A DNA stretch of 63,062 nt, counting the filler, from Neoconidiobolus thromboides FSU 785 (taxonomy: Eukaryota > Fungi > Entomophthoromycota): assembly GCA_025603075.1 (NCBI GenBank). It is 12 parts of 12 records of this genome, joined end to end, with 100 filler letters (N's around TTAATTAATTAA, not from the genome) between each part and the next. Parts side by side here need not be neighbours in the genome. Positions count along the whole stretch, not along the records: positions 8,023 to 27,586 come from MU626556.1; 11 more parts are not named here. One strand, given 5' to 3'. The notes under the pieces are model-generated. The model did not search any database and was not told the DNA's origin. It worked only from the letters and a program-made list of their open reading frames with translations. The position numbers were made by a program, and so were the translations under genes. Below are positions 4,846 to 27,686 of this stretch, in pieces (positions within the stretch are counted from its first letter, which is position 1; every line of letters begins with the position of its first letter).

Positions 4846-5819
4846 TTATTTTTTTTTAATATAATTTAAAGCATCTTCTGCAATCAATCGATGAATTCTT
4901 GTTGTTGGGTGAGTATTATCCCAATAAAAATAATTGTTAGCTGAAACACATTTTTTATCTTTATCAAAACAACTATCTTTTGTATTTAATGTAGTATTCG
5001 TCAATGTCAATAACCAGAAATCTATAAATAAAGGAATCAAAATAATGTAAAATATATTTATTATTACTATTATCATTATTATTATTAGCATTTAAACTTA
5101 CCACGAAAATGATCTTCAATCAAATTAATCTTATTATATTTTTGTTGCAATTTTATAAAACTTTGACTATATAATTGATTAAATATGTTTACTTTACTTC
5201 TAATAAAACTTTCAAATGGTTCCCCAATAGCCTGAATTACTGGTAATAAGTCAATAATAGTTGAAGTTGATAATAAAATAGTATTAAAAGGATAAAGATT
5301 TAATAAATCTGTTAAACAGGTTTCTAACTCTTGAATGATAATGTTTGGTTGACTATCTGGTAATATTAATTCATTACCCCCAAAATTAAAAGTTATTAAT
5401 GTTTGATTTAAATGTTTATAATGTTGAAAGTCTTGTTTGAATTTATTTACTTGCTGTTTGCATCCTGGTATTTTTAATGTGCTATCAACTAAAATTAAAT
5501 ATTGTAAGTATGAATAAAGTTAGAATATATAAAATTATAAATTATAAATTATAAATTTACCATTAAATAATTCATTATTACTAGTAGCTTTAATATACGC
5601 ATATGAAGTCAAATTAGCAACTAAATCTGTCTTCAAATAATCTAACCAAGTGTTGCCATTCGTCAATCGTCCATTATAGAATAGCGGACTTGTATGGTTT
5701 AACAATTTAAAATAATTGCCATTATCACTATAATTATCGCCAAAGGAAATGATTCGTTTATATGTTGAACTCAAGACCGAAGTTATTAAAGTACAAAGTA
5801 GGAAGCATTGAAATTTCAT
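4846..5819 (-). CDS. Secreted SGNH/GDSL lipase-like protein with catalytic Ser replaced (FGDNYSD)
   Basis: Signal-peptide-like N-terminus, block I FGDNYSDNGN, GRLTNGNTWLDYL, and block V YWDNTHPT. Introns lie between the ORF pieces. Confidence 0.85.
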
Positions 5820-8022: not shown

Positions 8023-8363
8023 TATTAACTCTTTACACAATTTACCCTCATTATGGAAAAACCCAGACGCTTTTGATCCTCAAAGATGGTTACAAGATGG
8101 GAAATTCAAAACTAACCCCAATTTTTCACCCTTTTTAATAGGACCTAGAGCTTGTGTTGGTAGAACGTAAGCTATTGTTAAGAAAGTAACAATAATTATT
8201 TATTTTATTTTTTAGCCTGGCTTGGATGGAACTATACTTAGTTAGTGCGAATTTAATAAGAAACTTCACTTTTAAAAGAAATATTCAAAAAAAAATCAAA
8301 TCTAGGCATTTTGATACCACTCAACCCATTGAAGCTATTGAAGTTTCTATAACTAAAAACTGA
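8023..8363 (+). CDS. Cytochrome P450, C-terminal fragment
   Basis: WKNPDAFDPQRW (PERF-like) and the heme motif PFLIGPRACVG, then an intron and the final exon LAWMELYLV...SITKN*. Confidence 0.9.
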
Positions 8364-9131
8364 CATGAGTCTTAATAAAAATAATTAATTTAAATTTATT
8401 TTATACTAAAAGTTGTTTAAATTTACACTTTTTCTTTCTTTTCTCACATTGTGAAATAAAGCACTAATTTTAAATTTTTAAATTTTTGAAATGAGAGTTA
8501 AAATAAAGCGTTTATTATGAGTGAATAGCGAAAAGATGAAACTGAAAACAAAACTTTATATATTAATATGAAATTATTGATGTCTATTGTTTTTGTTTGT
8601 ATCAAACGCGCTAAAAAATAGTAAAGTATGATTGTTGAAACGAAGGCATTGGAAAATCTTTAATTTGAAGATTTGTAAATCCTATAATCATACTTAAAAG
8701 CTTTTGAATGTTTTAAAACATAGAAAAGTCTGTACTTCATGATATTGCTTTAAGATAATAATACTAAATTTTCTATAAAAAATATGTTATTGTTGATATT
8801 TATTTGTTCATTTTAATAGCTATAACCGTATAAGAAACTCTGCATAGAAACGATAACCTTTAGTGCTTTTAGAAAAATTATTGTTTTCTACTAGCAATAG
8901 GAGTACAAAATATAAATATCACCAATCAAACAAGGTAAATGTCATAAAAAGACAAGGATATAAAACTTAATAGCTGATCATATCATGATCAAAGTTTACT
9001 CAAGTATACAAATGTTAAAAAGCATGAAACATCGATTTAATTCTTTTTTAATTTAAGTTTTTGAGTTTTTAAACCTAGTATACATTAGTCAATTATTTAT
9101 CTATTGTTGTAAATTTCAATTCCAATGCAAA

Positions 9132-9725
9132 ATGAATAATTATAGGATTGAAGACTTTTATTCTCAATCAGACTATTGCGACGACGATGATGTTTATGAT
9201 GATGATATCTATAATGATGACGTCAATAATGATTATAATGAAAATGCCCACAACGAAGATCCTTACAATGGGGATGCTTACAATGAAGATTATCACGATG
9301 ATGGCAACTCCAGCGATGATGATTATAATGAGAATTCCCACAGCGATAATGACTATAATGAAAGCATTCACAATAATTACAATGAAGATTCTCAAGGTGA
9401 AAATTCTCAAAATGAAGGTGACTACGATGATGATGACTATAATGATAATGGTCATAACGAAGATTCTCAAGATAAATATAAGTATAACAATGAGGGTTAT
9501 AACAACGAAGATTACAGCAGTTATAGGAATAGTGAAGGCATTATAACCAATACTCCAGATAAATATGATCGGGATACTAACCATTATTCTGCACTCCATT
9601 GTGAGATTATTGATGAATTTAATGAGGATGATTCATATGAAGAGATAGATGGTGTGGCGCAAAAGTGGATGGAAAAAAGGGCTAGAACAAGTGATGAAAT
9701 CAAGGATAAATATAGAATACTATAA
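9132..9725 (+). CDS. Asp/Asn/Tyr-rich low-complexity repeat protein (unknown)
   Basis: A 197-aa ATG-started ORF built largely from 5-aa units such as NEDPY, NGDAY, NENSH and NNEDY. Confidence 0.5.
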   Translation: MNNYRIEDFYSQSDYCDDDDVYDDDIYNDDVNNDYNENAHNEDPYNGDAYNEDYHDDGNSSDDDYNENSHSDNDYNESIHNNYNEDSQGENSQNEGDYDDDDYNDNGHNEDSQDKYKYNNEGYNNEDYSSYRNSEGIITNTPDKYDRDTNHYSALHCEIIDEFNEDDSYEEIDGVAQKWMEKRARTSDEIKDKYRIL

Positions 9726-10510
9726 GCTAAGAGGAAATACTATTAACCTACCACGTTTTTAAATAAAGGCAAATTGGGTCCAATTGTTAATTTTATAGCA
9801 CGTCAACTCATTGTTTTGTATCGTTTTTCTCAATTATAAATTCTATTTTCAATAAATCATACTGTTATTCAACTAATGTTTAACAAAATAAAGTAATATC
9901 ATAGGTTCACTTTTTATATTGAGATTTTCAAATTTTGTTTAATATTTACAAACTAGTTCATATTTAGACAAAGTATCCACCTTTTATAAATAATATTAAC
10001 TTTTAAAAAATTACTTTATTTTACTTAAAAATAGTAAATATGGAAGAAAAATAGATTGAAAAAAGCACAAAAAAGTTATATGGAAGCTTTTATAGTTAAA
10101 GACAACATGATTAGGTGAAGCTGCAATTGTATAAATAGCTTAAAGCTTCTTAATATTAAATGAATTCAACACTAAGCGTATTGATAATTAAAACAGCAAC
10201 TCAATAAATTTTAATATCCTTAAAACCGGTTATTTAAAATATCAGTGCTACAACAATTTGTTGGTAAAACAAAACTCAAATTAAAAATCATTAGAAAAAG
10301 GAATAGTAAAATATCCATTAGAATGTTTATTTTGGCATTATTGTTGATTTCTAAATTTTACTTTTCGTAACAAACCAACAAAACAATGAAGTAAGATACC
10401 CTCTGGTATTTCTACTATTATAGCTATGATAGCTATAAATGGATAAGTTTGAAAACTCAGTTAAAATCAAGTATAAAGTTTTTCATTACACTTTTTTTTG
10501 TCTATTTGCT

Positions 10511-10613
10511 ATATGGGGATTTTTTTTGGCTTCATCACTTTCTCTATCTTTTAAGCACTATTTAAGTGAAAAAGTTACTAGTAAAATTCTTACACAAAAA
10601 TACATCCACATAT
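10511..10613 (-). mobile_element. MITE family copy
   Basis: ATATGGGGATTTTT...AAAATACATCCACATAT with the internal TTAAGCACTATTTAAGTGAAAA core. Confidence 0.85.
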
Positions 10614-10774
10614 AATGCAAATAAATACTAGATAAAAAAACACTCTAACATGAGTTACTAGAATTAAGCAAAAGAGCAAATTTTTTTTGCAACGCTTAGC
10701 ACTTAATCTGCAATTTTTACTGGAAATCTAAATTGGACAAAAATTAAAATAAGCTTTTAGACCAATCTAAATAC

Positions 10775-10878
10775 ATTGGGAGTATTTTTTTTGACTTCAT
10801 TATTTTTTCCATTTTTAAGCGCTATTTAAGCGGGAAAATTGTTAGTAGGATTCTTAAACACAAAAATACATCTCCATT
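10775..10878 (-). mobile_element. MITE family copy
   Basis: TGGGAGTATTTT...TTAAGCGCTATTTAAGCGGGAAAA...AAAATACATCTCCAT. Confidence 0.85.
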
Positions 10879-11538
10879 ATTTTCATTTATGATTTTACTC
10901 ACTTTCATAAAAAACAATATTTAAATTCTGTCATTTGCTTAAAATAAATTTACGCATTTTTATATATAGATGCAAAAGTTCGGCCTTGAATTTACTTTGA
11001 AATGTATGAATCTTCAAGTAAATAACAAATTTTTAAAAATGCTCACTTCTTTTTAAAGTGCGTAAACTATAACAAAAATAGTGTACTTACTATTATTATT
11101 AAAGTATCGATTTGTGATGTTTCTCTTTCTTTTTAGCTATTTTTACATTTTTTAAACCTATATGTTGAATAAATACTAGTTAAGTCAATAGTATAAAAAA
11201 ACATATCAATATGCTTTAACCGTATTAACTTATACTATTCATAAAATCTTGCTTATTTTTTAATCATAATAGAATCAAAAAAGATAAGCTATTGTATCAG
11301 AGAAGATAGAGAAAAGAAAAAGACTAATTAAAAGTGATAAAATTAATCACATTATAGTCAGAAGCAAAATTGAATCCACAACTCATATAAAATGAAATAA
11401 CTCTTTTAACTCTCTTTTAGCTTTATTAACTTTATTAAATCTAGTATATGGACAACCATTATCGTATTCCTGCTGTTTGTTTGAACTTCAGGTACAATAT
11501 GGGTCGCTATATTTAATAGTAGATCCTTGATTTATTCT

Positions 11539-11946
11539 TCAAGCAATCGGAACTCTTATTATAACCAACCAGAGTACAATTATAATGACGTTCATAACCA
11601 GGTACAGTATATAAATACTTCTACCTCTAGTCGAATGCAGTACAGGAGTTCTACCATTGACATCTAATTCCAAGAAAGAAGTGCAGTTATTCAAAATCGA
11701 TCATACCATAATGGTAGGATTGTCGATACTCGAGTAGAGCATAAAGAGCTTGACTACAATTGTATTTTGATAAACTGTATTGAATCTATCGCTTGTCATC
11801 AAAGCGAAAATATAAATAGAGAAGCTGAACTTGAAGTAATTGATATAGGCTTTATATACTGTACTCTTTTAACTCAAACTACTTCACGCGAAAAGACGAA
11901 TGACTCAGAATTAACTAAGTTTAAAAAGAAAAGGTCAAATAGTTGA
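11539..11946 (+). pseudogene. Unidentified coding-like relic (long frame with one internal stop)
   Basis: The frame SSNRNSYYNQPEY...TIDI*FQERSAV...KKKRSNS* stays open for about 135 codons in very AT-rich DNA. Family not recognised. Confidence 0.25.
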
Positions 11947-13068
11947 ACGTAATACGTGGAATAAGTATAGTGTATTATAGAATAGGAGTGAAATTTGTTG
12001 AATTAGCAAGTTCTGCTTCGCAAAATAAAATGTGTTATCTAAATTTACTAATTTCATGATATATTCATTCATTGATTTATGCCCTCCACTACTAAACTAG
12101 AAGTTTCATTGCTTTTTAAATAAACTATAATGCTATTTAGTTCGCATATTAAGAAAACCGATGCTTTAGTCTCATCTTTTACACTAGTAATGTAATAAAA
12201 TGAACACATTATCTTGCCTTCTATTCAAATTCCCCGACCCTCTCTCATTACTATAGCTAGCTTAAACTTCTTTCTATAACTATTAGCAATTATCAAAAGG
12301 GCTTTCTGCCTGTCTTATACAATCCCTTTTCCCTTTTACTAGTGTGTAATTAAATAATTTACAATAAACTCTCCTTCTTTACTTATCAAAATGAAACTGA
12401 AACTCGTGATCCTTATGTCCAGTTCCTTACGAAACCAATCCTCCCCTCCCTCTTATTATCTTGGAATATGACCTTTCTTGCCTCAGTGACCCCTTTAGCT
12501 TATCCTTTACCCCACTTTAATCATCTGTTTAACTCAAATTTAAAATAAATATCAAAAGGTATAGCTTTGTGCTCTCTAAAAAATAAAATTATTACCATTT
12601 ATTTATTACTATCAGCTATTACTAGTTTACAAATTTTCTTTAATTTTATAAAAAATACAGGACTTTCAGTTATGTAGCATTTTTAATTTTATTAACCGTT
12701 TATTATTTTATAATTAATGTAGCTGATATACTATAAAATTTTAGTTTACAATATAATAGTCATAGTAAAATTATAATTTAGTTTAATAAGTTTATTTCAA
12801 ACCCAATTTATGAGCTAAAAGCTATTCTTATACTTCTTTATGATGCTTAAGATAAGCCAGCTGTTAAAAAAATTCCTGTTAAATTTGAATAAAATAATAA
12901 AATATATTTAAATAAAAGAATAAAAAAGATTTATTAAAGTAATATGAATTCAACAAACCACACAATAATATAGATATAATTAAAACTAAGCTCATTATTA
13001 TGTATATTTTCAATTCTCTGTTCTGGTTACATCAATTGAAATTCACTTTAATTCTGTTCATTGTTGTC

Positions 13069-14439
13069 TTATTGTATTGAATGACTTTCATTTTCTGCAT
13101 TACTATTGGTTTCCATCGTAGCATTCATGTTGGCTTGATCTAATAAAATATTTTCTTCAACACCGTTATTCACTTCATTAGCCTTATTGACTTCATTACC
13201 GCTTTCACTATTCTCTTGTAGACTTACAGCACCATTTGTTGAATTCTCTATTGAGTTATTCATCATTGTCATAGGGAGGGTATGGAAAACATCAGCAATA
13301 TTAATTTGAGGTAAACTCTGACTACTTAAATGACCAAGCTCATTGTTCATATCTCCATTTCCATTTGAATCTTGATGGTTCATTTTGTTAAAATTACTGT
13401 CATGATTTACCTCAGTTGAAGTTGAATTTGCAATATTATTAAATGCTTGCTCCATACTTAGATTTGTTTCATTCGATTGATTAGGTAAAGTAAATGCTTG
13501 CTCAATATTAAAATTTGCTCCATTAGTTTCATTATTTCCATTTTCAAATACACCTTCAAGCTGTTGGTTGTTTTCATTAGAATGCCCTGATATACTATTA
13601 AATACTTGTGACATTTCATTTCCTTGTATATTATGCCCTGATAAATTATTAAATGGATGCATGATTTGACTAATATTTTCTGCACCATGGTTAGTCATCG
13701 AATTGTATGCATGCTCCATATTTATGTTGTTTTCTGTCCCTGGTGTTGTTAAACCATTATATGAATGACTCATTGGTATACTAGGATTATTATTGTGATT
13801 ATGCATATTATTAAGCGCATGCTCCATAGCTAAATTCGATACTGTATTTTGGGAAGATGTATTGGTAATGTTAAGATCCATATTTAAGTTATTGTTTGTC
13901 ATATTCATAGATATACTGGTGAGAGCCTGTTCTAAATTAATATCTCCTACATTTGATTTATGAATATCACCATTGTTTGGATTCACACTAAATGATTCAT
14001 TCAACTTTTTAGAACTAAGACCATTTAATGGCGGAGTTGAAATTTCATCTTTTTTCATTTCACTATCATCCCCTGCTATATCTGCGTTAATCCAAGCTCC
14101 CGACCTTTTAACTTTACCAAGTTTTTTCAAATGATATTGTACCGTTTTATAAGCTACATTTAATTTCTTTGATAATGCTCTTGAAGATTGACGTGGATCT
14201 TCAGCTAATAAAGCTTCTAATGTAGTAGAATCAATTTTTAAAGGTCTCCCAGCACGAGCATGTTTATTCAAATTAAAGTCCCCAGACTCAAACTTGTTAA
14301 ACCAATATTGGCATTTTCGATCATTGGTGGATTCAGGACCAAATACAGTACGTATATTATTCGAAGCTTCTTTCGGTTTCCTTCCTAGTTTGAATTCGTA
14401 TAGCATACAATTCCTAATATTTAATTCTTGATCTTTCAT
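13069..14439 (-). CDS. Mariner/SETMAR-type paired HTH DNA-binding domain fused to an Asn/Met-rich repeat region, no DDE domain
   Basis: aa 1-117 (IRNCMLYEFKLG...WFNKFESGD...RAGRP...DPRQSSRALSKKLNV...HLKKLGKVKRSGAWI) match the mariner transposase N-terminus up to the WVPH-equivalent motif. The remaining ~340 aa are low complexity. The ORF is a single intact, intronless frame. Confidence 0.9.
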   Translation of the reverse strand: MKDQELNIRNCMLYEFKLGRKPKEASNNIRTVFGPESTNDRKCQYWFNKFESGDFNLNKHARAGRPLKIDSTTLEALLAEDPRQSSRALSKKLNVAYKTVQYHLKKLGKVKRSGAWINADIAGDDSEMKKDEISTPPLNGLSSKKLNESFSVNPNNGDIHKSNVGDINLEQALTSISMNMTNNNLNMDLNITNTSSQNTVSNLAMEHALNNMHNHNNNPSIPMSHSYNGLTTPGTENNINMEHAYNSMTNHGAENISQIMHPFNNLSGHNIQGNEMSQVFNSISGHSNENNQQLEGVFENGNNETNGANFNIEQAFTLPNQSNETNLSMEQAFNNIANSTSTEVNHDSNFNKMNHQDSNGNGDMNNELGHLSSQSLPQINIADVFHTLPMTMMNNSIENSTNGAVSLQENSESGNEVNKANEVNNGVEENILLDQANMNATMETNSNAENESHSIQ

Positions 14440-15558
14440 TGTTATTTAAAAAAATTGGGAAAAAACTTTAAATTAATTATTTTTTGGTTCATCGTTTATT
14501 ACACTTGATTTTATGCATTGCATTTTGATTGCCCAATCATTGGTTTGTATTTGCCAACTTTTGAACTTTCTAGAAATTTGCTATTTAACGGTTGGTTTGA
14601 GCAATAATTCTTAGTGGTTCCGGTTTTATAAATTACCAATAATCCATTATTTTTTGGAATATTGGGCAACTATTCGTTCTGGGCAGTATGTCTTAGAATA
14701 ACTTTATAGAATAAAATAAATGGATATTTTTTAGTACACTACATTATTTAATAAATAAAATATCATTTATTATTCACCCTACAAAAATTATAAACTCTAA
14801 AACTAAATCTTTTTAATCTTAAAATTATAAATCAATCGGCTTTATACTCATATTAAACCTGTTGAGTTCTTTTTGTTAATAAATAAAAACGCAAAATAAA
14901 AGCACAAACAACGATTCATATTTGAATTAAATAATTGATCGGATTATTTACAATAATAATTTTGAATTAATTGACTTTAAAATATAGCAATCGTATTTCA
15001 TTACGATTTGTTACATAGAAATCAATTTTATTTTATATTTAAGAATTTATTTTATTGTATACTTTATTAAAACAATGGTAAATACTTTGATTTTTAACAC
15101 GTCATTCATAAAGCAATAAACTAAAGATGACCTTGAATATAATAAAATAAATATTATTGGTCAACTAAACGCAGAAACTCTAAATAAATGTAAAGTCTAG
15201 ATTTAAACTGCAAAAATAAATGAAAAAGCACCATTTTATTGCTTCAGTAATGGTCCATATTTTGTAAGTTCAAATTTTTTTAGCAAAATTCTTAATAATG
15301 ATTCTCAAATATATCTATCAAATATATAAATTCACTCAAAGAACAGTTTGATTTTGAATTATTAAATAAATTGTAAGATTTAGTATATTATAACTTATTG
15401 CATTGCTTCATGAAAAATGAAAAATGTTTATAGATTTAAACAAAGATAGAAAATTTGATATGAAACTTATATGGCTTTAATTAGGACTCTTGTGCTTTAG
15501 AGTTTGTTAGTAAAATAAAAAGATGGTAATACAATATAAATAAATATTAATGTAAAAA

Positions 15559-16701
15559 TTAACGGCGATCTGGGGAGTCTTCTGCGTCCCAAACAACTCC
15601 AACAATTACGCTAATATCGTCCAATTTTCCACCTTGATAGTACATACCCTCTAATGTTGCTCTTTCTTGAAAAGGACTTGACATATTACGTGTATTTTCA
15701 GCAACATCCCTAGCCGCTATCTTTAGATTATTAGCTATTATTTGTGGATTTATTTCTTCTCTAATTTGTCCAAACCCAGCATCTTGACGATCAATCGATT
15801 TTTGTACAATATCTAAAATATCGTCATCAAATAAATTATCATATAATCCATCCGATCCCAAAACTATTATATCTCCTTTTTTAACTTGTACTTTAAATCT
15901 TTGTGCACTCAATGGATGATCTCCACCTACAATACCGAGTTGATATGGATAGTTGAAAGAATGCTGTTGTTCTTCAGTACGGAAAAGAAAATCTCCATCC
16001 CTGATTATAGCTAATCCACAATCACCTAAATTTGCTATTCTTAATTCATCCCCTCTTAATAAAGCCAAACAGGCAGTAGTAGAGCCTTTAATTTGTTGTA
16101 AATAAGCATCAAAGTTAGTACGGTCATAACTTTTAGCTAATATATTGACTGGATCAGCATGAAAATAATCAACAAATTCGTCAGCATCAATATCATCATA
16201 TTTATTTAACTCCGAATAAACATAATGCATCAATTTACGTGAATAAAAGGCAGAGTTACCATTATTTAAACTCCATCCACCAACACCATCTGCTATCCCT
16301 AAAGCATCACTTCTACAAAACACTGAATCTTCTCCATAACCTTTACTATAAAGGGCTTTATCTCCATCATCAGATTCCACCTTTTGTTTTTTTTTCGCTT
16401 GCCCAGAACAGGCACTATAAAGTGAATAATTGGGGGTGTAATGATTCGTCTGTAAACCAAATTGGTTATTGATATTTTTAAAATTATAATAAACAAAATC
16501 ATTAACCTGAGGTTCAGATTGTAACATGGCTTGAGCTTTTGATGGTAAAGTGGATTTGGTGTAAGCTCTTTGAAGCTTAACGTTGGAACCGTTTAACAAA
16601 CATGATGCGATTCTAGAATTTGATAAAGGTTTAACTATCGATGAATTGAATTTATTAATCAAGTTAACTACGTTTTTCATGGAATATAGATTAAAATGCA
16701 A
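15559..16701 (-). CDS. PTC7: Ptc7-type PP2C phosphatase with mitochondrial-type presequence
   Basis: GEDS, LGIADGVGGW, GSTTAC, ANLGDCG, EEQQHSFNYPYQLG, SDGLYDN and GGKLDDISV motifs. Confidence 0.93.
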   Translation of the reverse strand: MHFNLYSMKNVVNLINKFNSSIVKPLSNSRIASCLLNGSNVKLQRAYTKSTLPSKAQAMLQSEPQVNDFVYYNFKNINNQFGLQTNHYTPNYSLYSACSGQAKKKQKVESDDGDKALYSKGYGEDSVFCRSDALGIADGVGGWSLNNGNSAFYSRKLMHYVYSELNKYDDIDADEFVDYFHADPVNILAKSYDRTNFDAYLQQIKGSTTACLALLRGDELRIANLGDCGLAIIRDGDFLFRTEEQQHSFNYPYQLGIVGGDHPLSAQRFKVQVKKGDIIVLGSDGLYDNLFDDDILDIVQKSIDRQDAGFGQIREEINPQIIANNLKIAARDVAENTRNMSSPFQERATLEGMYYQGGKLDDISVIVGVVWDAEDSPDRR

Positions 16702-18001
16702 TTATATAGTCTTTCCAAAAAAAATATATTGTTGAATTGGAAAGAGAATAAAAAGATAATTTTGAATTTTTATTTTATTTTGTTTTATAAATAAGCATGG
16801 TAATCAGATTTTAAAACCAAGCTTTTTTTGAAAAAAATAATTCATTAATCCCTACCAACTGATGATCTCAATTCAAAACACTAACAATTAGAGCTTAAAA
16901 ATTCAATTTGATTTTGGGGCAACTTATCTTTATATAGACACAGTAGTTAAATTTCAAATCCAAAAGTAAAGTAAATTAAATTCAATACTTTATTTAACCA
17001 ATCATATTCATTTTCCTTATCTAAAATGTCTTATCTAAAAGATAAGAAATTGACATTATCATCTTAAAATACTACTTTTGGTAGTTGTTAAAACTCGAGT
17101 TAGTTCCAATAAGTTTATTAATAAACAACTTATATAAATATTATTGGCTAAATTTAACAAATTCAAATCAATCAGCCAAAATTCATTTCAAGCAATATAA
17201 TGCTTATAATATTGTAGCACTCATACTATCAGTTAACCATATTAAACTTAACGGATAGACATCATGGACATTGTGTTCATTGATAGAATAGTCATGATGT
17301 TAAATGATATTAAAAATATTAATAAACGGTGGTTATTATCATTATTAAAATAAATTAATAATATAAAATATATGTATTTTATTGAATTCATGTGATAAAA
17401 ATTAGGGAGAAAGATTCTCACGGTTTAGGATAGCTTAGTAATAAATAAAACAAAAATAAATAAAACATCAAATTTGGGGGTTGTAGGGTAATATAATAAT
17501 TATAAATTATGTATATAAAATTTTATTAAAATCATTATAAATTATAACATTGTTATGAATCATAATATTACTTTATTAACTAATGATTGTTATTATTTTT
17601 TTCTTTATTTTAGCTGTAAACGATCGAATCTGAATATTATTTTCTCATTGTTATTAGTTGTAATTTAACTTTTTAATAAATTTTGATTTTTAGGGGTAAC
17701 TGCTATTTCACTATTTTCTGTTTCAACTTGACTCAATCAGAAAGTTAGTCTTAATTTGAGCATTAATATTGCCAATCATTTTGGCTCTTAAAGTCTAAGA
17801 TTTTTCTTTCGTTAGAAGCAACAATCAAGATTTAAAAAAAGTATCCCAACCCAACAGGAAAGTAAGCCATAAGCAAATAAACTCAATTTTGAATTTTATT
17901 TTTGAAATTGTTTAAAAATCACTTTATTTACTTATTTTTGAAACTTTTTTACGCTCAATTTAGCATCAAAAGAAAGTCCAAAATAATCAAAATAAAAAAA
18001 G

Positions 18002-18606
18002 ATGGTCTACCAATCGATGAATAATGCTGAAAAAATGGGATATAATTATGATCAAACTCACAAAGCTGGAAGTAATAGTCAAGAAGATTCTGAATCGGGA
18101 GAGTTGTCCCTTTATCAAGGCTTAACTAATGTGCATGAATTAAGTGTTAATTTGGGTCTTGCTATCATTGATTTCAATGCTAGTCCATCTATTAAAAATC
18201 TGGAGAAAAAATGGTAACTTTTTTTAGCTATAAAAATATAGTTCTTCCATTGAAATTAAATTGGATAATAGTAATGATTTAATTGATGGCTTGAGAGATT
18301 TATATAAGACTAGTGATGAAACAAATTTGGAAGTACCTTTTGAAGTTATTAGGTAATAATGAAAGTTTATAAAGTTAAGTATAAAATTTAAATGGTCCAA
18401 AAAGTTGCTTTGATCAAGGTCAAAGCCCCGATTCGTACATGGCTACCTTTATGGAACAAGCAGTATCCGAAAATCAATTTTGTAAAGGTAGATTGGACAC
18501 TTTAGCTGTAATTAATTTATTAATTCAATTTAATTTGATTTTATGTTTTGTTTATATAGTCGTTTGCTGATCTCCTGGAAGAAGAAATTAAGTGTAACTT
18601 TGATGA
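18002..18606 (+). CDS. MED10: Mediator subunit Med10/Nut2, multi-exon, 3' end uncertain
   Basis: The spliced translation LGLAIIDF...EVPFEVISCFDQGQSPDSYMATFMEQAVSENQFCKGRLDTLASFADLLEEEI matches the Med10 VPxEVxxxIDxGxNP...ENQxxKGK pattern. Confidence 0.8.
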
Positions 18607-20119
18607 GTTTTAATTTATATATTTATTATGATATAAATAGAAAATCAATTTAGTATGAGTAGTAGTTTTTATTAATATTTTCAGTTGATAATGAATATTT
18701 AGTATCAAAGTTTAATTTTTCCATTAAAATGGATTATTCTATTTTATATTGGAATTATTAGATTATACTACAATAAATTTTATTACAAGGCTTGGTTAAT
18801 TTATTATTAATAAGATTATTGTTATCTTTAATTATTTTGGAGAAATTCTATTATAAAAGTCAAAGTAATGTTCATGTCTTTTAATGCAGCAAAATAGGAG
18901 GTTTCTGTATAAAAGTTAGTGTTCTAATTTATTCAATTTACTTTTATATAGACGACAGATTGATTTATAAATGATTGAGGGCTAAGGTAGTGATAATAGC
19001 ATAGATACATAATCAAGATATAGTAAAAATCAATTTATTTTTTATGATATACAATAGAAGCAGTGACAGTTTTAGAAAAGTAACTATTGGATTAGTCATC
19101 CCAATGTAGAACGGAGTTATCTGATAAAAAAATTAAGGATAAAAATAATACATTAGTAATGATTATTTTAAACATCTGAAGTTTCTTTAGTTGTTTATTA
19201 TATTTCAATCTTTTGTTTAAACTAGTTTTTAAAGAACGCCAACAATGATAAGATGAAGTTCATCAAAATAAAGATTAAGTCTTTAGTAGAGTGAAAGGTG
19301 AATCATAAAGGGAACAATAGGTAATCAAAGAGCTTTTAATTCAGGATTTAATAGTTGTGAATGTGATAAAAGCTTGTAATCTACTAGTTAAAGTAAGAGT
19401 CTTATTTTATAGTAGAATAATATTAGTTATTACTTTAACTCTTTATTCGGCTTTAATTGACGAAATAGATAGCTAGCTTTGACTACTTAAACCTGCATTA
19501 GAAAAAATAAAAATGACAATTTTTTAGTGATAAAAGAATACAATATATTTAAGATTGAAGTTAACATATGAATATAATTCTGATATTTTATTGTAATAAA
19601 TAATTCATCAAACAATGTATCAAAAATTGTTTTGTTAAGTTTCTACTTTTAAAGTTATTTTTATTTCAAGTAATTTTGAGAACATTAATTTGAATTAATG
19701 ATACTTTTTTACATAAATCATTAAACTAAATAATATAAAAATAAAAGTATAACAATCATAAATTGAATATCCAAGCATCATTGAAATGACCGATCTCATT
19801 CTAAAAACAATGCTTGTCAACTTAATTCAATAACTTTTCAAACTCAAAGATTTCTTAAAAGATCGTAAATTAAAATTACATAACTCTATTTTAATTGGAT
19901 TAATTTGATTGTAACCAATTAAATCAGAAATTAACGTCATTTGACAAAATGAATAATAAACACTCTCAAAAGATGGAGTTAAATTCGTGTAGCATATGAA
20001 AAGTAAACCAAATATTCAAGTATATAAAGACAACTAAAATCATAACGAATACTTTTTTAAATTATTTTGTATCTTCATCCTTTTTTATTTCTCTTTAATT
20101 TAGAACAAGATATCTAACC

Positions 20120-21416
20120 ATGTCCTTATTAAAAAACAGTTTATTAAAACGTGCTTTACCTAGTATATTAAAACAGACTCAATGTTTTAATTCTACAATG
20201 AGTTTCAATTTAACAGAAGAACAAAAAGAGTATCAATCCTTAGCCCGTAAATTTACTGCTGATGAAATTATACCCAAAGCTGCACATCATGATCAAACTG
20301 GTGAATATCCTGTTGAAATCTTAAAGAAAGCTTGGGAATTAGGCTTAATGAATACCCATATCCCTTCCGAATATGGTGGTTTAGGATTGGGTGTATTAGA
20401 TGGTTGTATTATTACGGAAGAATTAGCTTTTGGATGTACAGGTATTCAAACAGCTATTGAAGCTAATGGATTAGCTGAAGCACCTGTAATTTTAGCTGGT
20501 AATGATGCACAGAAAAAAAAATATTTAGGACGAATGACTGAAGAACCCTTAATGGCCGCTTATGGAGTAACAGAACCAGGAGCAGGTTCCGATGTTGCTG
20601 GATTAAAAACAAAAGCAGTAAAGAAAGGAAATGATTGGGTTATCAATGGTCAAAAAATGTGGATTACCAATGGTGGAAAAGCCAATTGGTATTTTGTTTT
20701 AGCTAGAACTGGAGATTCTAATACTCCTACTGGTAAAGCTTTTACTGGTTTTATCGTTGATGCTGATGCTCCTGGTATTTCTGTGGGTAGAAAAGAAATT
20801 AATATGGGTCAAAGAGCATCCGATACTAGAGGTATTACTTTTGAAGATGTAGTTGTACCTGATGAAAATAGGTAATTATCATTTTATTTTATATTTATTA
20901 TATTGTTATTCAAATCATATGCTAAAAATAAATAATAGATTAGGTGAAATTGGTCAAGGTTTTAAAATAGCCATGGGAGCCTTTGACACCACACGACCAT
21001 TAGTTGCGTCTGGAGCTGTAGGATTAACCCGCCGAGCCTTAGAAGAAGCAACCAAATATGCTCTAGAAAGAAAAACAATGGGAACACCAATTATCAAACA
21101 TCAAGCAGTGGCATTTATGTTAGCTGATATGGCCATGAATTTAGAAGCATCCCGATTATTAGTGCATAAATCAGCATGGTTAAGAGATAATAAACAAAAA
21201 AATACGCATTTAGCTTCCATGGCTAAAGCAATGGCCTCCGAAGCGGCTAATAAAGCTGCTGCTGATTGCGTCCAAATCTTTGGGGGTAATGGATTTAATA
21301 CAGAATACCCAGCGGAGAAGTTGTTAAGAGACTCTAAAATATTTATGATTTATGAAGGTACTTCCCAAATTCAAAGACTTATTATTTCACGTCATTTGGC
21401 AGAGACTTATCAATAA
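20120..21416 (+). CDS. ACADM: Medium-chain acyl-CoA dehydrogenase, one intron near 20872-20939
   Basis: [64 protein letters not shown] and [13 protein letters not shown]. Confidence 0.96.
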
Positions 21417-21780
21417 ACGAGGATATATATATTGTAATGTTTTCTTTTAATGATATTGAGAAATCGTAGTTTGCTATAATTGTTATTGTATTTTAATTTT
21501 AATTACTTATGGATTGATTGATTTTAATAATCTTATTTTAATAAGCTTATTTTAATAATTTTAGATAATACAAAAGAATCCAATATAATATTATCTCTAT
21601 CATCAGATATATAATTAGTATTATTACAAATATTATAAAACAATATATTATTATAATTTTAATAAGTTATAAAATTTAATAATATTATATCAACTTTTAA
21701 ATAATCCACTAGTAGTATTTTTTTAGTAAATTTAATTAAATTATCTTTTTTTCATATAAAAAATGGACTAAATTCTTAAA

Positions 21781-21880
21781 TTAGGAGTATTTTTTAATTT
21801 CATTACTTTTTCCATTTTTAAGCACCATTTGAGTGAAAAAGCTGCCAGCAAAATTTTTGAACAAAAAATATATGCCCAAC
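21781..21880 (-). mobile_element. MITE family copy
   Basis: GGAGTATTTTT...TTAAGCACCATTTGAGTGAAAA...AAAAATATATGCCC. Confidence 0.75.
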
Positions 21881-22113
21881 TAGTTTTCCATTTCTTATTT
21901 TTTAATTCATCATCAAATAAGAATTAAAAAAAAGGAGAACTCAAATTTCCGTCTAAGTTATTATTTGGCTAATAAACAAGTTTGTAATGAACTGAAATAA
22001 GCCAATTTTCAAGCTTTCAAACGAAATGATATAAAAAGAGTTGAGATGTTCAAAGTTCAATACTTTTTTCTATTCGATTTGAGCAAAAGTTGAAAGGATT
22101 GCAATAAAGAATT

Positions 22114-23341
22114 ATGATAGATCAATTCATTTTATATCTTAAATATGCTTACTATTTATTATTGTTAAAGTTGACACAGTTATCTCAGGTAAATTATTCT
22201 AGTAAATAAAAATAAAATAGATAGACTAAACTAAACTAAATGATTTAAAAAATGATAGTGGATTGGTCAACCAAGCGGTACAAGTAATAATCAATTTGTT
22301 CAAAAATTAGTTGTATTTGGTAAATCTTATATTATTTATTTATTTATTTATTATTATTATTGTTCTTATTATTTAACATTAAAAAATAATCTATTAATAA
22401 TAAACTCATTATGTTTATAAACATTAATAAACAATCAACTAACTTTTTAATTCTTAATTTTTAATTTTATATCAATAGGAGATGACTTAGCCCTTGGGTA
22501 TGGAGACAAGATATCATTTGGTAGTGGAATAGGACTCACATTTTATTTGAAAACATTATTATTTAAAGCTAAAAATATTAAACAAGAATGGAAATTATTT
22601 AATTATGGTCAATATGGTAGTACCTCTAATCAATGGCATCCAGAAGGTCCGTTATTTAAGAAATATATTGAAAGGAATCAGACTATTGAAGGAGCAGGAT
22701 TGTTTTTGTTCTCAGTTGGGATGTATGATGTTAAGTAATTAATTTTTTATCTTGAATGAAACTATGTAAGAATGGGAGTTAATTAATGTTTTTTATTTAA
22801 ATAGGAAATCAGATGATTTTGATTTAATTATTAATAATATAATGGAAACAAGCGAAAAGATTAGTGAATTCGGCAAAATATATATATATACAATACCCGA
22901 TTTAACAAGAAATGTTGTACTAAAACAAGAGATTCATAAGTTTAATAAATTATTAATGGAAAGAATTAATAGGTAAATTGAGTTACTTTATTTTATATTA
23001 TTTTTACATATTATTAATTAATATTTATTTATTTATTTATTATATTATATTATATTATTATAGTTTAAATCATCCTAATATTAAATTATTATTACAATTG
23101 GATAGTAATAATTATGAATTTAAACGTATTGATCTTATTAATGGTAATGGCACTCATTTTAATAAAAAGGTAAATATTATTATTATTATTATTATTATTA
23201 TTTATAAAATATTAAGAATTCTAATTTTAATTCAATTTTTATTAGGGTTATCACAAAATAACTAAAGACAGTTTAGATGTGATTATTAATGATATGGTTA
23301 AATTAGAATTCAATGCTTTTTCAAAAGCATTAGGTTATTAA
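22114..23341 (+). CDS. Divergent SGNH hydrolase-like protein (block I FGDDL), multi-exon
   Basis: The spliced translation gives LVVFGDDLALGYGD, NYGQYGSTS, FSVGMYDV and GNGTHFNKKGY, the SGNH blocks I, II, III and V in order. Confidence 0.65.
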
Positions 23342-23413
23342 ATTACAATAAAATATAAATTATAGTATAATATAAATTAAATTAAATTAAATTAATTAAT
23401 AAATAAATATTGT

Positions 23414-25567
23414 TTATTTTGATAATACATTATTTAATTGAATTAATTTTTTAGTTAATAATTCAATAGGTTCATTTATTTGTTTTTTAATATCTTGGAT
23501 TTTCTATATTAAAATAAAGGTTAAATAAATCATTATAATTGTAATTGTTAATTATTTACCTCATCACTAAAATTTAATTCAAAATTAGAATATGTGTTAT
23601 TTAATAATTGTTGATTTAATGTGTTACTATAATAAAATAATAAAATAATAGATTAATAAAATAATAGATTAATAAAATAATAAATAAATAGAAATAAAAA
23701 CTTACAATTGATTTAATAATTGAAATAAAGAATTATCCAATGTATTTGTATTATTAATGTTATTTAATAATAACAAATTATTATCTTTCTCTTCTTTAAT
23801 CAATAGAAATTCTAATATTTTATTTAATAAATCCTTATTTATCTAATACATAATTTAATAACTAATCAAATAAGCGAATAATCAATAATATTAATTTACC
23901 TTATTATCTTTTTTCATTATATTATTATTGCAATTAACTTTTAACTCAATAAATATTTTATCTAACATAATCAAAACCTCATGAAATTCATGAAATTTCT
24001 GTTTTAAATTACAATAATTCATTTTTAATAATAAATTAAAATATATTGTTAATTTTAAATAATTAATAATTAAATCTATTATTATTTTAAATTTATTATA
24101 AACTTGTTTTTGTTGATTAATTTGTTTTTGATATTGAATTTGTTTTATATATTGAATTTCAATTAATTGAGTTTTGAAATTAATACTTTGTTCTTCTTTT
24201 TGCTCTTCTTTTTGTTCAATTATAAGTTGTAATAAACTATTTGAACATTAACTATTATAATTATTATAAAAAGTTAGATTAAAACTTACTTAATGTCTTT
24301 TGTCGTTGATGAGTTGTTATTTCTGAAATTAGCCAATAACTTTTGTTTTAATTGATTTTTGTATTTTATTTCTTTCAATTTACGTTGATTTTTTAAATAA
24401 CTAATAAATTGATTTTATTACTAGTTAATTATATACTATTAATGTTAAACCTTACATTTCATTCAATTTGTTAATTTCATCCAATATCTCTATTTTCCAA
24501 AAAAAACATTAATAACTTTTTCTCTTAATCTTTTAGTTTATACGAATACTTACTTTTTTCTTTGTTATTATATGTATTATTATTTAATTCAAAATTGATT
24601 TTAATTACTTCTATTAGATGAATAGCAATGGATTTAAAATTCAAATGAATGTCTTTCATTAGCGTTGTAAATAATAAAATGTCATATTCTAAACAAGTAG
24701 TTAAGTTTCAAAAAACGTAGAATAAACACTATAAACATACTATCACATTGAATTAAGTCTAAAAATTTACTGTCCATCCAACCAAATGTTTTCTTAATCT
24801 AATTAAAAATTTAATATTAAATATGTCTCATATTATTACTGTAACTTCAAAATCTTACTTCTAAACTTTGTTTTTTAAATTTCATTTCTAATTCTCTTTC
24901 TTGATCTTGAATTAATACTTCTTTTTGTTTTTTTAATATTTTAATTTCTTTTTGTAATTCAATTTCAGTATCACTAATCCTATTAAATCTCCATACAACT
25001 AAACTCAATATACTAATTACCTTAAACAATTTAATTGATTTTTTAATATCAAATTCTGTTGTTCAAGTCGATCAAGTTGAGTTAGTTGTATTTGATATTT
25101 GAAGCTAAATAATTTAATAGAAATTAACTAAAATTGATATTAGTTTATTTGAATCTTTAAATTACCTTTTCTCTTCTAATTGACTATGAGTAGAATTCAT
25201 AATCCTAACGCCGCTTTGTTTTCCCTATTAAAATAATAAAGACAGAAATAAATAACATTCTAAAGTTTCTAATCACATAACAATAAAAATGAAAACTTAC
25301 CCTCAATTCTATCATCTCTAATCTCTCATCTTCACTCAGACACTTCCATTTCCAATACACCAATTCATCCATTAGTTTGTTTTTAATTTTACTAATATTA
25401 TCTTGTTGATTTTTATTACTACTATCCTCTTTATTTCTACATTGAAACAAATGCGACTTTCTTAAATCGATGGAGTCTTTTTCATCTTTCCTCAATCCCT
25501 GTCGAATCTTTTCAAATAACTCATAATTATTAGAAGCTCTTGTTGGTCCTTGAAATTGAGAAGTCAT
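23414..25567 (-). CDS. Hypothetical multi-exon coiled-coil-rich protein
   Basis: The first exon MTSQFQGPTR...MIELR is followed by K/E/Q/L/I-rich exons separated by GT-AG introns, ending VLSK*. The exon structure is approximate. Confidence 0.5.
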
Positions 25568-26084
25568 AAAGATTAACAGATTGGATTATTTTTCAAACAG
25601 TTGAAATTGATTATAAATTCTTTTAAAAAAACAAAATAAGTCATAATAAAAATTAGAATCCTTTAACTATTTTCTAGTAAAAGCAAAATTTGCAACTAAA
25701 TTTAACCAAGTTTACTTAAGAAATAAAAACAAATTTTAATTAACAAGTGCTTTTCGAAACTGACCATGTGGGCTGATTGTGTTACACTTAATAAGTCTGC
25801 TAACTTTTCTTTATATCATTTTAAATAAAGGATTATGACAGACCAATCCTCAAATATTGATTTCAATTATTTTTAAAATTTTTAATACATCTGAAATTTT
25901 ATTAAATTTAGTGTATTATAAAATGATTTTTATAAAATATTATAAAATTTATATCTAAAATAGTAATTTATAAGATATTTTCTAAGTAATCTGGCTTTTT
26001 GGGTAGGTTCATGTTGGCAAAAGTACAAAACTCTTGTGGTTTAGCTTTTACAGAGAAAATAATTTACTTTTAGATATTAAAAGC

Positions 26085-26198
26085 ATATAAGGGTGTGTTT
26101 TTTTGTTTAAGAATTTTACTATGATTTTTCCATTTAAGTAGTGCTTAAGTGGAAAAATTGTTAATAAAACTCTTAAATATAAAATTATATCCTCATAA
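26085..26198. mobile_element. Symmetric (left arm + inverted left arm) MITE variant
   Basis: TTTAAGAATTTTACT...TTCCATTTAAGTAGTGCTTAAGTGGAAAAATTGTTAATAAAACTCTTAAA. Both halves are the same arm in opposite orientations. Confidence 0.75.
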
Positions 26199-26686
26199 GT
26201 TGTTGCAATTAATGGCTTTTTAAAATCAACTTTAGCTTAAAAAGTCAGATTACTTTAAAAAATACTTTATAATAAATTTTTTTGAATTGTATAAATAAAA
26301 TTTGAAATTAATTTTTAACCAAAAAAGTTATCTCAAATAATATAAAAAAAGTATTAAAAAAAATTAAAATATTCAGCTTAAAGTATTTTTTAAATATTAA
26401 TAAAAAAATGTTATTTAAAAACATAAAAGGATGTTCAAATTAGTCTTAGGATTTTTTAATTTCAATATAATAAAAATAATAATATAAATATTGTGATTCA
26501 TTTATATTAATTTTAATAGCTATTTATGAAACCCAGAATTTATACAATTTTATGATAATGATGGAATTCATTAAAACTTACTATTGATAATAATAAACTT
26601 GATTAGGCAATATATAAAGTTAATGTTTTAAAAGAAATAAGAAATAAATATCAATAAATACCATTATCATCAACCATAGTTTTACT

Positions 26687-26793
26687 ATATGGGGCTGTTT
26701 TTTTTAGTTTCATTATTTTTCGATTTTTTAAGCGCTATTTGAGTGGAAAGGCTGCTAATAAAATTCTTAAATAAAAAAAATACATCCTCATAT
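26687..26793 (-). mobile_element. MITE family copy
   Basis: ATATGGGGCTGTTTTT...AAGCGCTATTTGAGTGGAAA...TACATCCTCATAT. Confidence 0.9.
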
Positions 26794-26973
26794 TTTTTTA
26801 ATAAGTATAAAAACTTTGGATTTAATATAAGTAGAAATTAATATAACCACTTAAAAATAGTTAATAAGAATAAAATATTAATATCATAATTTATTATTAA
26901 CAATATAAAAAAAATCAAAAATAAGTAAATTAAAATTATCATATAATATTTAATAATTTAATCATCAAAATTT

Positions 26974-27063
26974 TTGGATGTTTTTTTAGCTTTATTACTT
27001 TTTCCATCTTTTAAGCATTATTTGAGTGGAAAAATTGTTAGATACAAAAATACACCCCCATAT
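26974..27063 (-). mobile_element. MITE family copy with internal deletion
   Basis: GGATGTTTTTTTAG...TTAAGCATTATTTGAGTGGAAAAATTGTTAG...AAAATACACCCCCATAT. Confidence 0.8.
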
Positions 27064-27136
27064 TTTCATTTATCAAAATTTTATGAAATTTTAATAAATA
27101 AAATCATTGATAGCTTTTTAGAGCAAATTTAAATAT

Positions 27137-27243
27137 ATATGGGGATGTATTTTTGTGTTTAAGAATTTTACTAACAAATTTTCCGCTCAAGTAGCGCTTA
27201 AAAAATGAAAAAAATAATGAAGCCAAAAGAAATACTCCCATAT
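27137..27243 (+). mobile_element. MITE family copy (near-consensus)
   Basis: ATATGGGGATGTATTTTTGTGTTTAAGAATTTTACTAACAAATTTTCCGCTCAAGTAGCGCTTAAAAAATG...AAATACTCCCATAT. Confidence 0.9.
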
Positions 27244-27384
27244 GGTAGTATAAAAAAGTGATATAATAAAAAATAAAAAATTCGATTAAATTTGATTATA
27301 AGCTATATATGAAAAAGATTATAACTTGTAAAATAGCAATTATAATTTCAAAGGTGTCCTTAATAACTTGAAACACCCTATATG

Positions 27385-27490
27385 ATAAGGGGCTGTTTTT
27401 TTTAGTTTCATTATTTTCCCATTTTTTAAGTTCTATTTATGTGGAAAAATTGTGAGTAAAATTCTTAAATACAAAAATACATCCCCATAA
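27385..27490 (-). mobile_element. MITE family copy
   Basis: GGGGCTGTTTTTTTTAG...GTGGAAAAATTG...AAAATACATCCCCATA. Confidence 0.88.
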
Positions 27491-27686
27491 ATTGAGTTAA
27501 ATTTTATTTATTATACAAGTCCTTTTATTTTTTATTTTTTATTTTTTCCTTTCCTTACAATATCTTTGTCAAGCATCTAATATATGNNNNNNNNNNNNNN
27601 NNNNNNNNNNNNNNNNNNNNNNNNNNNNNNTTAATTAATTAANNNNNNNNNNNNNNNNNNNNNNNNNNNNNNNNNNNNNNNNNNNN

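Follow-up and report, generated by a model that had tools for sequence, protein, structure and literature searches.

We analysed a stretch of 63,062 nucleotides (hereafter the window) from the fungus Neoconidiobolus thromboides FSU 785 (assembly GCA_025603075.1) and found that an open reading frame (ORF) of 456 codons, located on the minus strand at positions 13069–14439, is plausibly, from its sequence, a single-copy host gene descended from the N-terminal paired helix-turn-helix (HTH) of a mariner-family (Hsmar1/SETMAR-like) transposase. Judged by the criteria for the molecular domestication of transposases taken from PMC13548663, the ORF bears the sequence-level marks of co-option: it is single copy and intact, it has neither terminal inverted repeats (TIRs) nor target-site duplications, and it has lost the catalytic module while keeping the DNA-binding one. 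The reading that we favour, with a probability of roughly one half, is that the ORF encodes a lineage-restricted DNA-binding protein, in which the paired HTH reads a specific site and an acidic, disordered tail, where a short motif occurs eight times, docks partners in an activator-like manner. Window positions 8023–27586, where the ORF lies (at contig positions 5047–6417), are one whole contig of 19564 bp (MU626556.1) in an assembly of 799 contigs and 24.6 Mb.

The N-terminus of the predicted protein is, by homology, a complete mariner-type paired HTH, Hsmar1-like more than Mos1-like. The first-pass annotation, made from the DNA alone, had described it as a complete mariner/Hsmar1-like bipartite HTH, and Pfam, PDB and profile searches as well as a structural model with Foldseek all bore this out. 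The model was built with AlphaFold2 (AF2) from a 46-row alignment; 107 residues had a predicted local distance difference test (pLDDT) score >90, and six helices were followed by a hairpin at amino acids (aa) 109–118. HTH1 (aa 7–54; positions 14278–14421, minus strand, as for all parts of the ORF given below) matched the Pfam family HTH_48, ‘HTH domain in Mos1 transposase’, with E=7.4e-17 and 61.7 bits against a curated cut-off of 24.1 (65.6 bits in a six-frame search of the genome), and was modelled at pLDDT 94–98 with helices at aa 2–17, 22–33 and 40–51. HTH2 (aa 71–107; positions 14119–14229) was modelled with helices at aa 71–80, 86–93 and 97–106 and matched Pfam HTH_24, a winged HTH, at aa 77–107 (E=2e-5). 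Between the two lies a linker at aa 60–68 (H-A-R-A-G-R-P-L-K; positions 14236–14262), in which R62 and R65 are AT-hook-like by alignment with the structure 7s03, and in which G64, part of the R-A-G-R-P segment at aa 62–66, is invariant across the mariner HTH alignment. The last transposase-homologous segment is a basic stretch and beta-hairpin at aa 109–121 (K-V-K-R-S-G-A-W-I-N-A-D-I; positions 14077–14115), with modelled strands at aa 109–112 and 115–118. Here, GAWINADI of the ORF aligns with GKWVPHEL and transposase homology ends at aa 119–121. The end of the domain had been placed at GAWI, taken as the counterpart of W-V-P-H, and this was correct: a profile of 10 full-length mariner transposases covered aa 4–121 of the ORF alone, with a probability of 99.8%, and the alignment stopped at aa 121.

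The best PDB sequence match was the DNA-binding domain of SETMAR, which is Hsmar1-derived (7s03, E=6.7e-26), at aa 6–110 and ungapped over 105 residues, followed by the Mos1 transposase (3hos/4u7b, E=4e-15) at aa 8–119. When Foldseek was run with the AF2 model, 7s03 again came first (E=2e-8, 40% identity), ahead of the Mos1 complexes. Among the 26 columns conserved at >=75% in 45 mariner HTHs, the ORF retains 23, a share of 0.88 where the family averages 0.85, and the figure is mildly favourable to the ORF since the 45 HTHs compared were its own best matches. In SETMAR, R371 makes a base contact in HTH1, R392 and R395 act as minor-groove AT hooks, and HTH2 makes contacts through R417 and through H427, S428 and R432 of the recognition helix (PMC9062482). 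We mapped these contacts onto the ORF through the ungapped 7s03 alignment. Four of the seven base-contacting residues are kept (R41 for R371, R62 for R392, R65 for R395 and R87 for R417), and the HTH2 recognition positions are changed, with Y97, K98 and Y102 in the ORF versus H427, S428 and R432. The domain thus looks competent for DNA binding, with its modelled fold intact, and its target site probably differs from the Hsmar1 TIR because these three recognition residues of HTH2 differ; the chance-level count of the Hsmar1 TIR core in the genome, given below, agrees with this. As in SETMAR and Mos1, neighbouring major grooves would each receive the recognition helix of one HTH motif, and an AT-rich minor groove would be read by the R-A-G-R-P linker. 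The basic stretch K-K-L-G-K-V-K-R may direct the protein to the nucleus.

The remainder of the protein, aa 118–456 (339 residues; positions 13072–14088), is an acidic tail that is predicted to be disordered and for which our searches returned no homologue. The first-pass annotation had announced about 340 residues rich in N, S, M, H and E in place of the catalytic domain, and the composition of aa 118–456 agreed with this: 22% N, 11.5% S, 8.3% E, 5.6% M and 4.4% H (15/339). The tail has 40 D/E versus 7 K/R, for a net charge of about -33. It had no Pfam match, and throughout its length the AF2 model gave pLDDT <50 without secondary structure. The asparagine share reaches 11% in a resident transposase and 16% in the ORF at positions 9132–9725, and it is 4–8% in the neighbouring PP2C phosphatase and acyl-CoA dehydrogenase genes. 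The N-richness of the tail, being partly a background trait of a 25%-GC genome, is therefore by itself no argument for condensates.

The most informative feature of the tail, absent from the first-pass annotation, is a short amphipathic motif present in eight copies at aa 166–393 (positions 13261–13944), as found by pattern counts against shuffles. Strictly defined, it runs N-hydrophobic-x-[MIL]-E-[QH]-A-[FLY]-N/T-x-[IM]. Its cores occupy aa 169–173, 205–209, 241–245, 276–280, 294–298, 312–316, 329–333 and 381–385, with spacings of about 36, 36, 35, 18, 18, 17 and 52 residues. A loose pattern was observed 8 times versus 0.018 expected from 5000 shuffles of the tail, and the strict form [MIL]-E-[QH]-A-[FLY] was observed 5 times versus 0.002 expected; the pattern was defined post hoc, and we hold that the excess is too large for this to matter. 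The copies differ in their codons (GCT, GCG or GCA for Ala, GTA or GTT for Val, CTC or CTT for Leu, GAA or GAG for Glu, TTT or TTC for Phe). Repeats in the DNA of this region are weak, with a 51-nt spacing (D1, D2, D6), and Tandem Repeats Finder returned two trivial short arrays only, the motif copies being too diverged in DNA for a tandem array. Since the codons differ and the DNA repeats are only weak, the motif appears to have been maintained as protein sequence rather than to result from a recent DNA duplication. When a DNA pattern for M-E-Q-A-F was searched genome-wide, this ORF alone was found, and therefore the genome holds no protein family with exactly that motif.

According to the mechanism that we propose, the tail would offer these eight hydrophobic motifs, set in an acidic context, as multivalent sites for partner docking, much like an acidic activation domain, and the protein would act as a sequence-specific DNA-binding regulator whose target is probably other than the Hsmar1 TIR. 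Binding to DNA in vivo, recruitment of partners and a regulatory role are what the two parts of the protein together suggest. The earlier proposal of a transcription factor whose tail would activate transcription or form condensates is kept here as a conjecture drawn from composition. An intact DNA-binding domain joined to a multivalent tail could also belong to an architectural chromatin protein similar to CENP-B or Abp1, which would bind dispersed or repeated sites while the disordered tail makes contacts with chromatin or heterochromatin. There is a fungal precedent in S. pombe, where Abp1, Cbh1 and Cbh2 are pogo-derived DNA-binding proteins with chromatin roles. However, CENP-B-like proteins keep DDE-like and dimerisation domains and the ORF has neither, no repeated target family was identified, and an acidic tail with hydrophobic motifs suits activation or partner recruitment at least equally. 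We thus regard an architectural role as unlikely.

The coding character of the ORF was found to be that of a host gene. The frame counts 456 codons plus a stop (TAA at 13069–13071), without any in-frame stop inside. It starts with an ATG that has an A at -3 (ACAATGA), and the N-terminus is fixed because an in-frame TAA precedes this ATG by three codons. The remaining five frames contain 16–76 stops across 13069–14439, and over 2000 shuffles of the ORF the longest open run was 129 codons, so that a frame of 456 codons in 31%-GC DNA far exceeds chance. The intact 456-aa ORF of the first-pass annotation was thus found again on the minus strand, and ‘intronless’ holds in the sense that the frame is continuous in the DNA, nothing beyond continuity being meant by the word. 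An AATAAA lies about 135 nt beyond the stop, a weak signal given the AT-rich DNA. GC contents at codon positions 1/2/3 are 0.40/0.38/0.21 for the HTH and 0.40/0.31/0.22 for the tail. This periodicity (GC1>GC2>GC3), tail included, is that of the neighbouring host genes, and the flanks have 20–22% GC. GC at the third position (GC3) is thus 0.21–0.22 versus 0.16–0.26 for the genes of PP2C and acyl-CoA dehydrogenase nearby, and the correlation of relative synonymous codon usage between the ORF and these two genes is 0.73–0.75. Codon usage of the ORF is therefore host-like. As this is so despite an identity of <=47% to any mariner, the ORF seems to have resided in the genome for long, a time during which neutral sequence of such base composition would have gained stops.

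These data bear on the possibility that the ORF is a non-functional relic, that is, a truncated mariner insertion or a chimeric pseudogene that is unexpressed, still open by chance and bound to decay. Single orphan ORFs derived from transposable elements (TEs) are often relics, and in keeping with this the collections searched held no orthologue and the ORF is apparently unannotated. Nevertheless, shuffles gave at most 129 open codons and each of the other frames contains 16–76 stops, codon usage and GC3 are host-like and imply a long residence, the HTH keeps its conserved core columns as often as the family does on average, and the motif of the tail has been kept in eight copies with differing codons. 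A relic is thus rather unlikely in our opinion.

We then compared the ORF with the transposons of the genome. Searches of the genome scored best candidates only, so that copy counts are lower bounds. Each of four queries, namely the ORF protein, a 2.5-kb DNA segment with flanks, HTH_48 and a full-length mariner transposase (HTH_48 + Transposase_1 + DDE_3), matched a single locus among the candidates scored. The mariner Transposase_1 domain (PF01359) had no match in the genome search. Within the ORF, Pfam found no DD34D catalytic domain (Transposase_1/DDE_3), and a six-frame tblastn of positions 11000–16000 with 10 mariner transposases detected no catalytic remnant: outside the HTH all matches had E>=0.17, except that the repeated HTH of transposase P0064 matched the ORF's own HTH a second time. 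Together with the profile alignment, these searches agree with the absence of the DDE domain reported in the first-pass annotation. They further point to a domain that is absent rather than decayed in place, and a tail made of a decayed or frameshifted catalytic domain was rejected on the basis of the profile-profile comparison and of tblastn. The lack of flanking TIRs likewise stood, since none was detected within 1.1 kb on either side, where AT-rich arms of 70–76% complementarity or matches of <=18 nt were present and none reached E<0.01. The remark of the first-pass annotation on decayed TE-like sequence elsewhere in the window concerns other pieces and was set aside. Many near-identical copies flanked by TIRs and TA, which would have spoken for a non-autonomous element, were looked for, and one locus without TIRs was found.

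It could be argued that the ORF is nonetheless part of a non-autonomous element that can still move, or a gene that such an element has captured, and that the other copies were collapsed or are missing in the assembly; the fragmentation into 799 contigs and the scoring of best candidates only would leave room for this. However, the 2.5-kb DNA query matched itself alone, no TIRs lie within 1.1 kb on either side, the flanks run straight into the unique housekeeping genes for PP2C and acyl-CoA dehydrogenase, and the genome gave no match to a mariner transposase that could mobilise the ORF. A mobile element is therefore very improbable. The genome does contain 27 matches to DDE_3, 23 of them above the curated cut-off and many in open frames of 340–550 codons. 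Inspection of two of them showed Tc1/Sleeping-Beauty-like elements that have HTH_SB/HTH_28-type heads and are possibly still active. One of the two was compared directly with the HTH of the ORF and showed no significant similarity to it. Since the HTHs of the inspected DDE_3 elements are unrelated to that of the ORF, we rejected the idea that the ORF is a truncated or broken copy of the resident family. The DDE_3 elements are clustered, with six on C225 (1346–26984) within 27 kb and three on C162 (27197–33578) within 6.5 kb; others are on C3, C96 and elsewhere (loci L010–L014), and the N-terminus of L014 (549 aa) is extended by about 180 aa of N-rich, coiled-coil-like sequence.

The nearest sequences to the ORF in public collections are transposases of arthropod or other animal mariners, and fragments of these, with 30–47% identity. 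When 1.84 billion representative proteins were searched exhaustively with phmmer, 2294 matches were returned, all within aa 1 to about 148 and at <=47% identity, and the best score (141 bits) was obtained with tandem HTH fragments of the ant Ooceraea biroi. The tail was matched by nothing among these 1.84 billion representatives, of which the ORF itself is not one. A word-indexed protein search with aa 1–125 in the size range of full-length proteins gave 208 candidates, none of them significant, and a search of the ESM Atlas with the tail gave no usable look-alike. When 30 of the matches were looked up, all those with names were from arthropods (ants, beetle, butterfly, amphipod, Limulus, pseudoscorpion, aphid), and one unnamed full-length relative adjoins exons of an animal-type G-protein-coupled receptor.

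With such relatives, one may imagine that an arthropod mariner entered the fungal lineage, that the element was purged, and that the HTH was kept and joined to the new eight-motif tail, giving a Neoconidiobolus-specific regulator and the first domestication of a mariner (HTH_48) to be described in fungi. The arthropod origin of all the named nearest HTH relatives, the lack of any other mariner-family sequence in the genome and the infection of aphids and thrips by this fungus are compatible with this transfer, which is weakened by an identity of just 30–47% and by the fact that mariners in databases are overwhelmingly arthropod. The scenario is attractive but draws on no more than a best-match list biased by the database, and we consider it rather speculative and improbable as a whole.

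The same relatives have to be considered for a second possible role, that of a transposition repressor or guardian, in which a protein limited to DNA binding would occupy the TIRs of incoming mariners and block the assembly of the transpososome, the tail being secondary. The KP-type truncated P-element repressor is an analogue, and such a guardian would protect a fungus living inside mariner-rich arthropods. The genome is one without a mariner-family catalytic domain and without a second HTH_48, the named nearest relatives of the HTH are all arthropod mariners and the unnamed one lies beside animal receptor exons, all of which would suit a repressor. In addition, positions of the HTH1 dimer interface of SETMAR are partly kept (Y14 and F33; PMC9062482 and 7s03 alignment). 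On the other hand, no mariner TIR-like sites were found: the 19-bp TIR core of Hsmar1 (PMC9062482), searched in the genome with <=3 mismatches, gave 3 matches versus 1 for the reversed control and so occurs at chance level. No known mariner exceeds 47% identity to the HTH, and the repressor leaves a 339-residue open tail with eight conserved motifs unexplained. As the proposal is one of pure analogy, we judge it unlikely.

Several observations weigh against the favoured reading, that of a lineage-restricted DNA-binding protein with a partner-docking tail. First, the ratio of non-synonymous to synonymous differences (pN/pS) between the motif copies was 0.45 in the core and 0.88 in the flanks, a contrast that agrees with upkeep of the motif as protein sequence but is biased because the copies had been chosen by their amino-acid motif, and the AF2 model shows no helix at the motifs. 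Second, the copy counts behind the single locus are lower bounds, obtained by best-candidate scoring in a fragmented assembly. Third, the protein collections that we searched yielded no orthologue of this architecture, and no close relative of N. thromboides is evident in them; the best non-self matches of the neighbouring acyl-CoA dehydrogenase are 85–87% identical, and the distantly related fungus Allomyces already reaches 85%. Since no close relative is evident there, the missing orthologues are weak evidence either way. In Conidiobolus coronatus, the acyl-CoA dehydrogenase locus (+/-10 kb) contains neither the ORF nor a PP2C neighbour, and thus no synteny. Finally, the ORF is absent from both large public protein collections, in which the neighbouring acyl-CoA dehydrogenase is present as N. 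thromboides FSU 785. It appears for that reason to be unannotated, possibly owing to the filtering of TE-like domains or to a lack of transcript support.

N. thromboides infects aphids and thrips. It is an entomophthoralean insect pathogen with a small, repeat-poor genome of 8,867 genes and 13.5% repeats (PMC10515909). The immediate upstream neighbour of the ORF, 1.1 kb away and likewise on the minus strand, is a gene for a PTC7-like PP2C phosphatase (positions 15559–16701). Its likely start is an ATG at residue 8 (M-K-N-V-V), the listed TTG start being an artefact of the bacterial code. A gene for a medium-chain acyl-CoA dehydrogenase follows at positions 20120–21416 on the plus strand, with one short intron near 20860–20940. 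Compared through its first exon alone, it matches the protein annotated in N. thromboides FSU 785 at 100% identity, and it is 77–87% identical to orthologues from early-diverging fungi and 69–80% identical to animal ones. Because these two genes flank the ORF, the contig is, by its gene content, ordinary fungal chromosome and not contamination. At positions 9132–9725 (plus strand), an ORF of 197 aa without a Pfam match is D/N/Y/E-rich and of extreme low complexity (31% D+E, 16% N); two further frames hold long open runs there, which points to a compositional or repeat-driven feature. Downstream of the main ORF, GC rises (0.33) at positions 11500–13000 with a strong negative GC skew (-0.19 to -0.33), and about 12300–12540, inside this stretch, the minus strand is purine-rich. 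No Pfam-matching ORF was found within 11500–13000, and the stretch may be an untranslated region or a small-exon gene. A very AT-rich block (GC 0.14–0.15) occupies positions 23000–24500, with no recognisable gene, tRNA or Rfam match. The tRNA and Rfam scans of this contig piece found nothing, and nine minor ORFs had no significant Pfam match.

New regulators are known to arise when the DNA-binding domains of transposases are co-opted, as illustrated by SETMAR, by CG4570, cag and toy in Drosophila and by Pdc2 and Abp1 in fungi. A non-exhaustive literature search found no fungal co-option of a mariner HTH_48, and we know of no reported fungal example that is built on this domain. If expressed, the ORF would be an independent co-option, and seemingly a young one, in a fungus that is early-diverging and pathogenic to insects. 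It would also offer a compact natural design, in which a DNA-binding domain is joined to a motif-array tail with an eight-fold motif as a candidate for partner recruitment or activation, and a possible marker for the transfer of transposons from arthropods to fungi. If not expressed, it would merely be an unusually well-preserved relic. There is also an annotation gap to consider, as the filtering of TE domains may hide genuinely co-opted genes in fungal catalogues.

Among known systems, autonomous mariners such as Mos1 and Hsmar1 (DD34D, about 340–350 aa) share with the ORF the N-terminal 120 residues, homologous up to the W-V-P-H-E-L linker. In contrast to them, the ORF has no Transposase_1/DDE domain, no TIRs and no TA-flanked ends, was found at one locus and shows fungal codon usage. 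We therefore rejected its identification as a transposon, on the lack of a DDE domain and of TIRs and on the one locus found. In fungi, Pdc2 of S. cerevisiae and Abp1/Cbh of S. pombe are host genes that derive from DNA-binding domains of pogo, in the Tc1/mariner/pogo superfamily, and Pdc2 is a transcriptional activator with a C-terminal activation region. These proteins differ from the ORF by an HTH of the pogo/CENP-B type, not HTH_48, and by the retention of a DDE-like region, and they are not expected to be related to it in sequence.

By ancestry the ORF belongs to the mariner HTH_48 family, and its closest analogues in function would be the DNA-binding domain of SETMAR and the co-opted DNA-binding modules of Drosophila. 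SETMAR (Metnase; PDB 7S03; PMC9062482) resembles the ORF in its paired HTH with an AT-hook-like linker and in being a single-copy host gene built on a mariner DNA-binding domain. However, SETMAR has a SET domain and the whole Hsmar1 transposase, including its DDN catalytic domain, and the ORF has neither: Pfam found no SET domain in the ORF, which starts three codons after an in-frame stop. Moreover, H427, S428 and R432 in HTH2 of SETMAR are Y97, K98 and Y102 in the ORF. The ORF is thus not SETMAR, an identity that we rejected for want of both the SET and the catalytic domains, and since SETMAR belongs to a primate and the ORF to a fungus, the two would be independent events. The fungal genome also has no Hsmar1-type TIR landscape. 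The co-options of Tc1/mariner DNA-binding modules in Drosophila (CG4570, cag, toy and LOC26532114; PMC13548663) are like the ORF in that the HTH was kept and the DDE lost, and in being single copy without TIRs; LOC26532114 is lineage-restricted (PMC13548663), and the ORF appears to be so likewise. Unlike the ORF, they come from another host kingdom and are reported with syntenic orthologues, estimates of the ratio of non-synonymous to synonymous substitution rates (dN/dS) and expression data (PMC13548663). Finally, while the partner joined to the HTH in toy is a homeodomain, that in the ORF is a novel, motif-bearing disordered tail.

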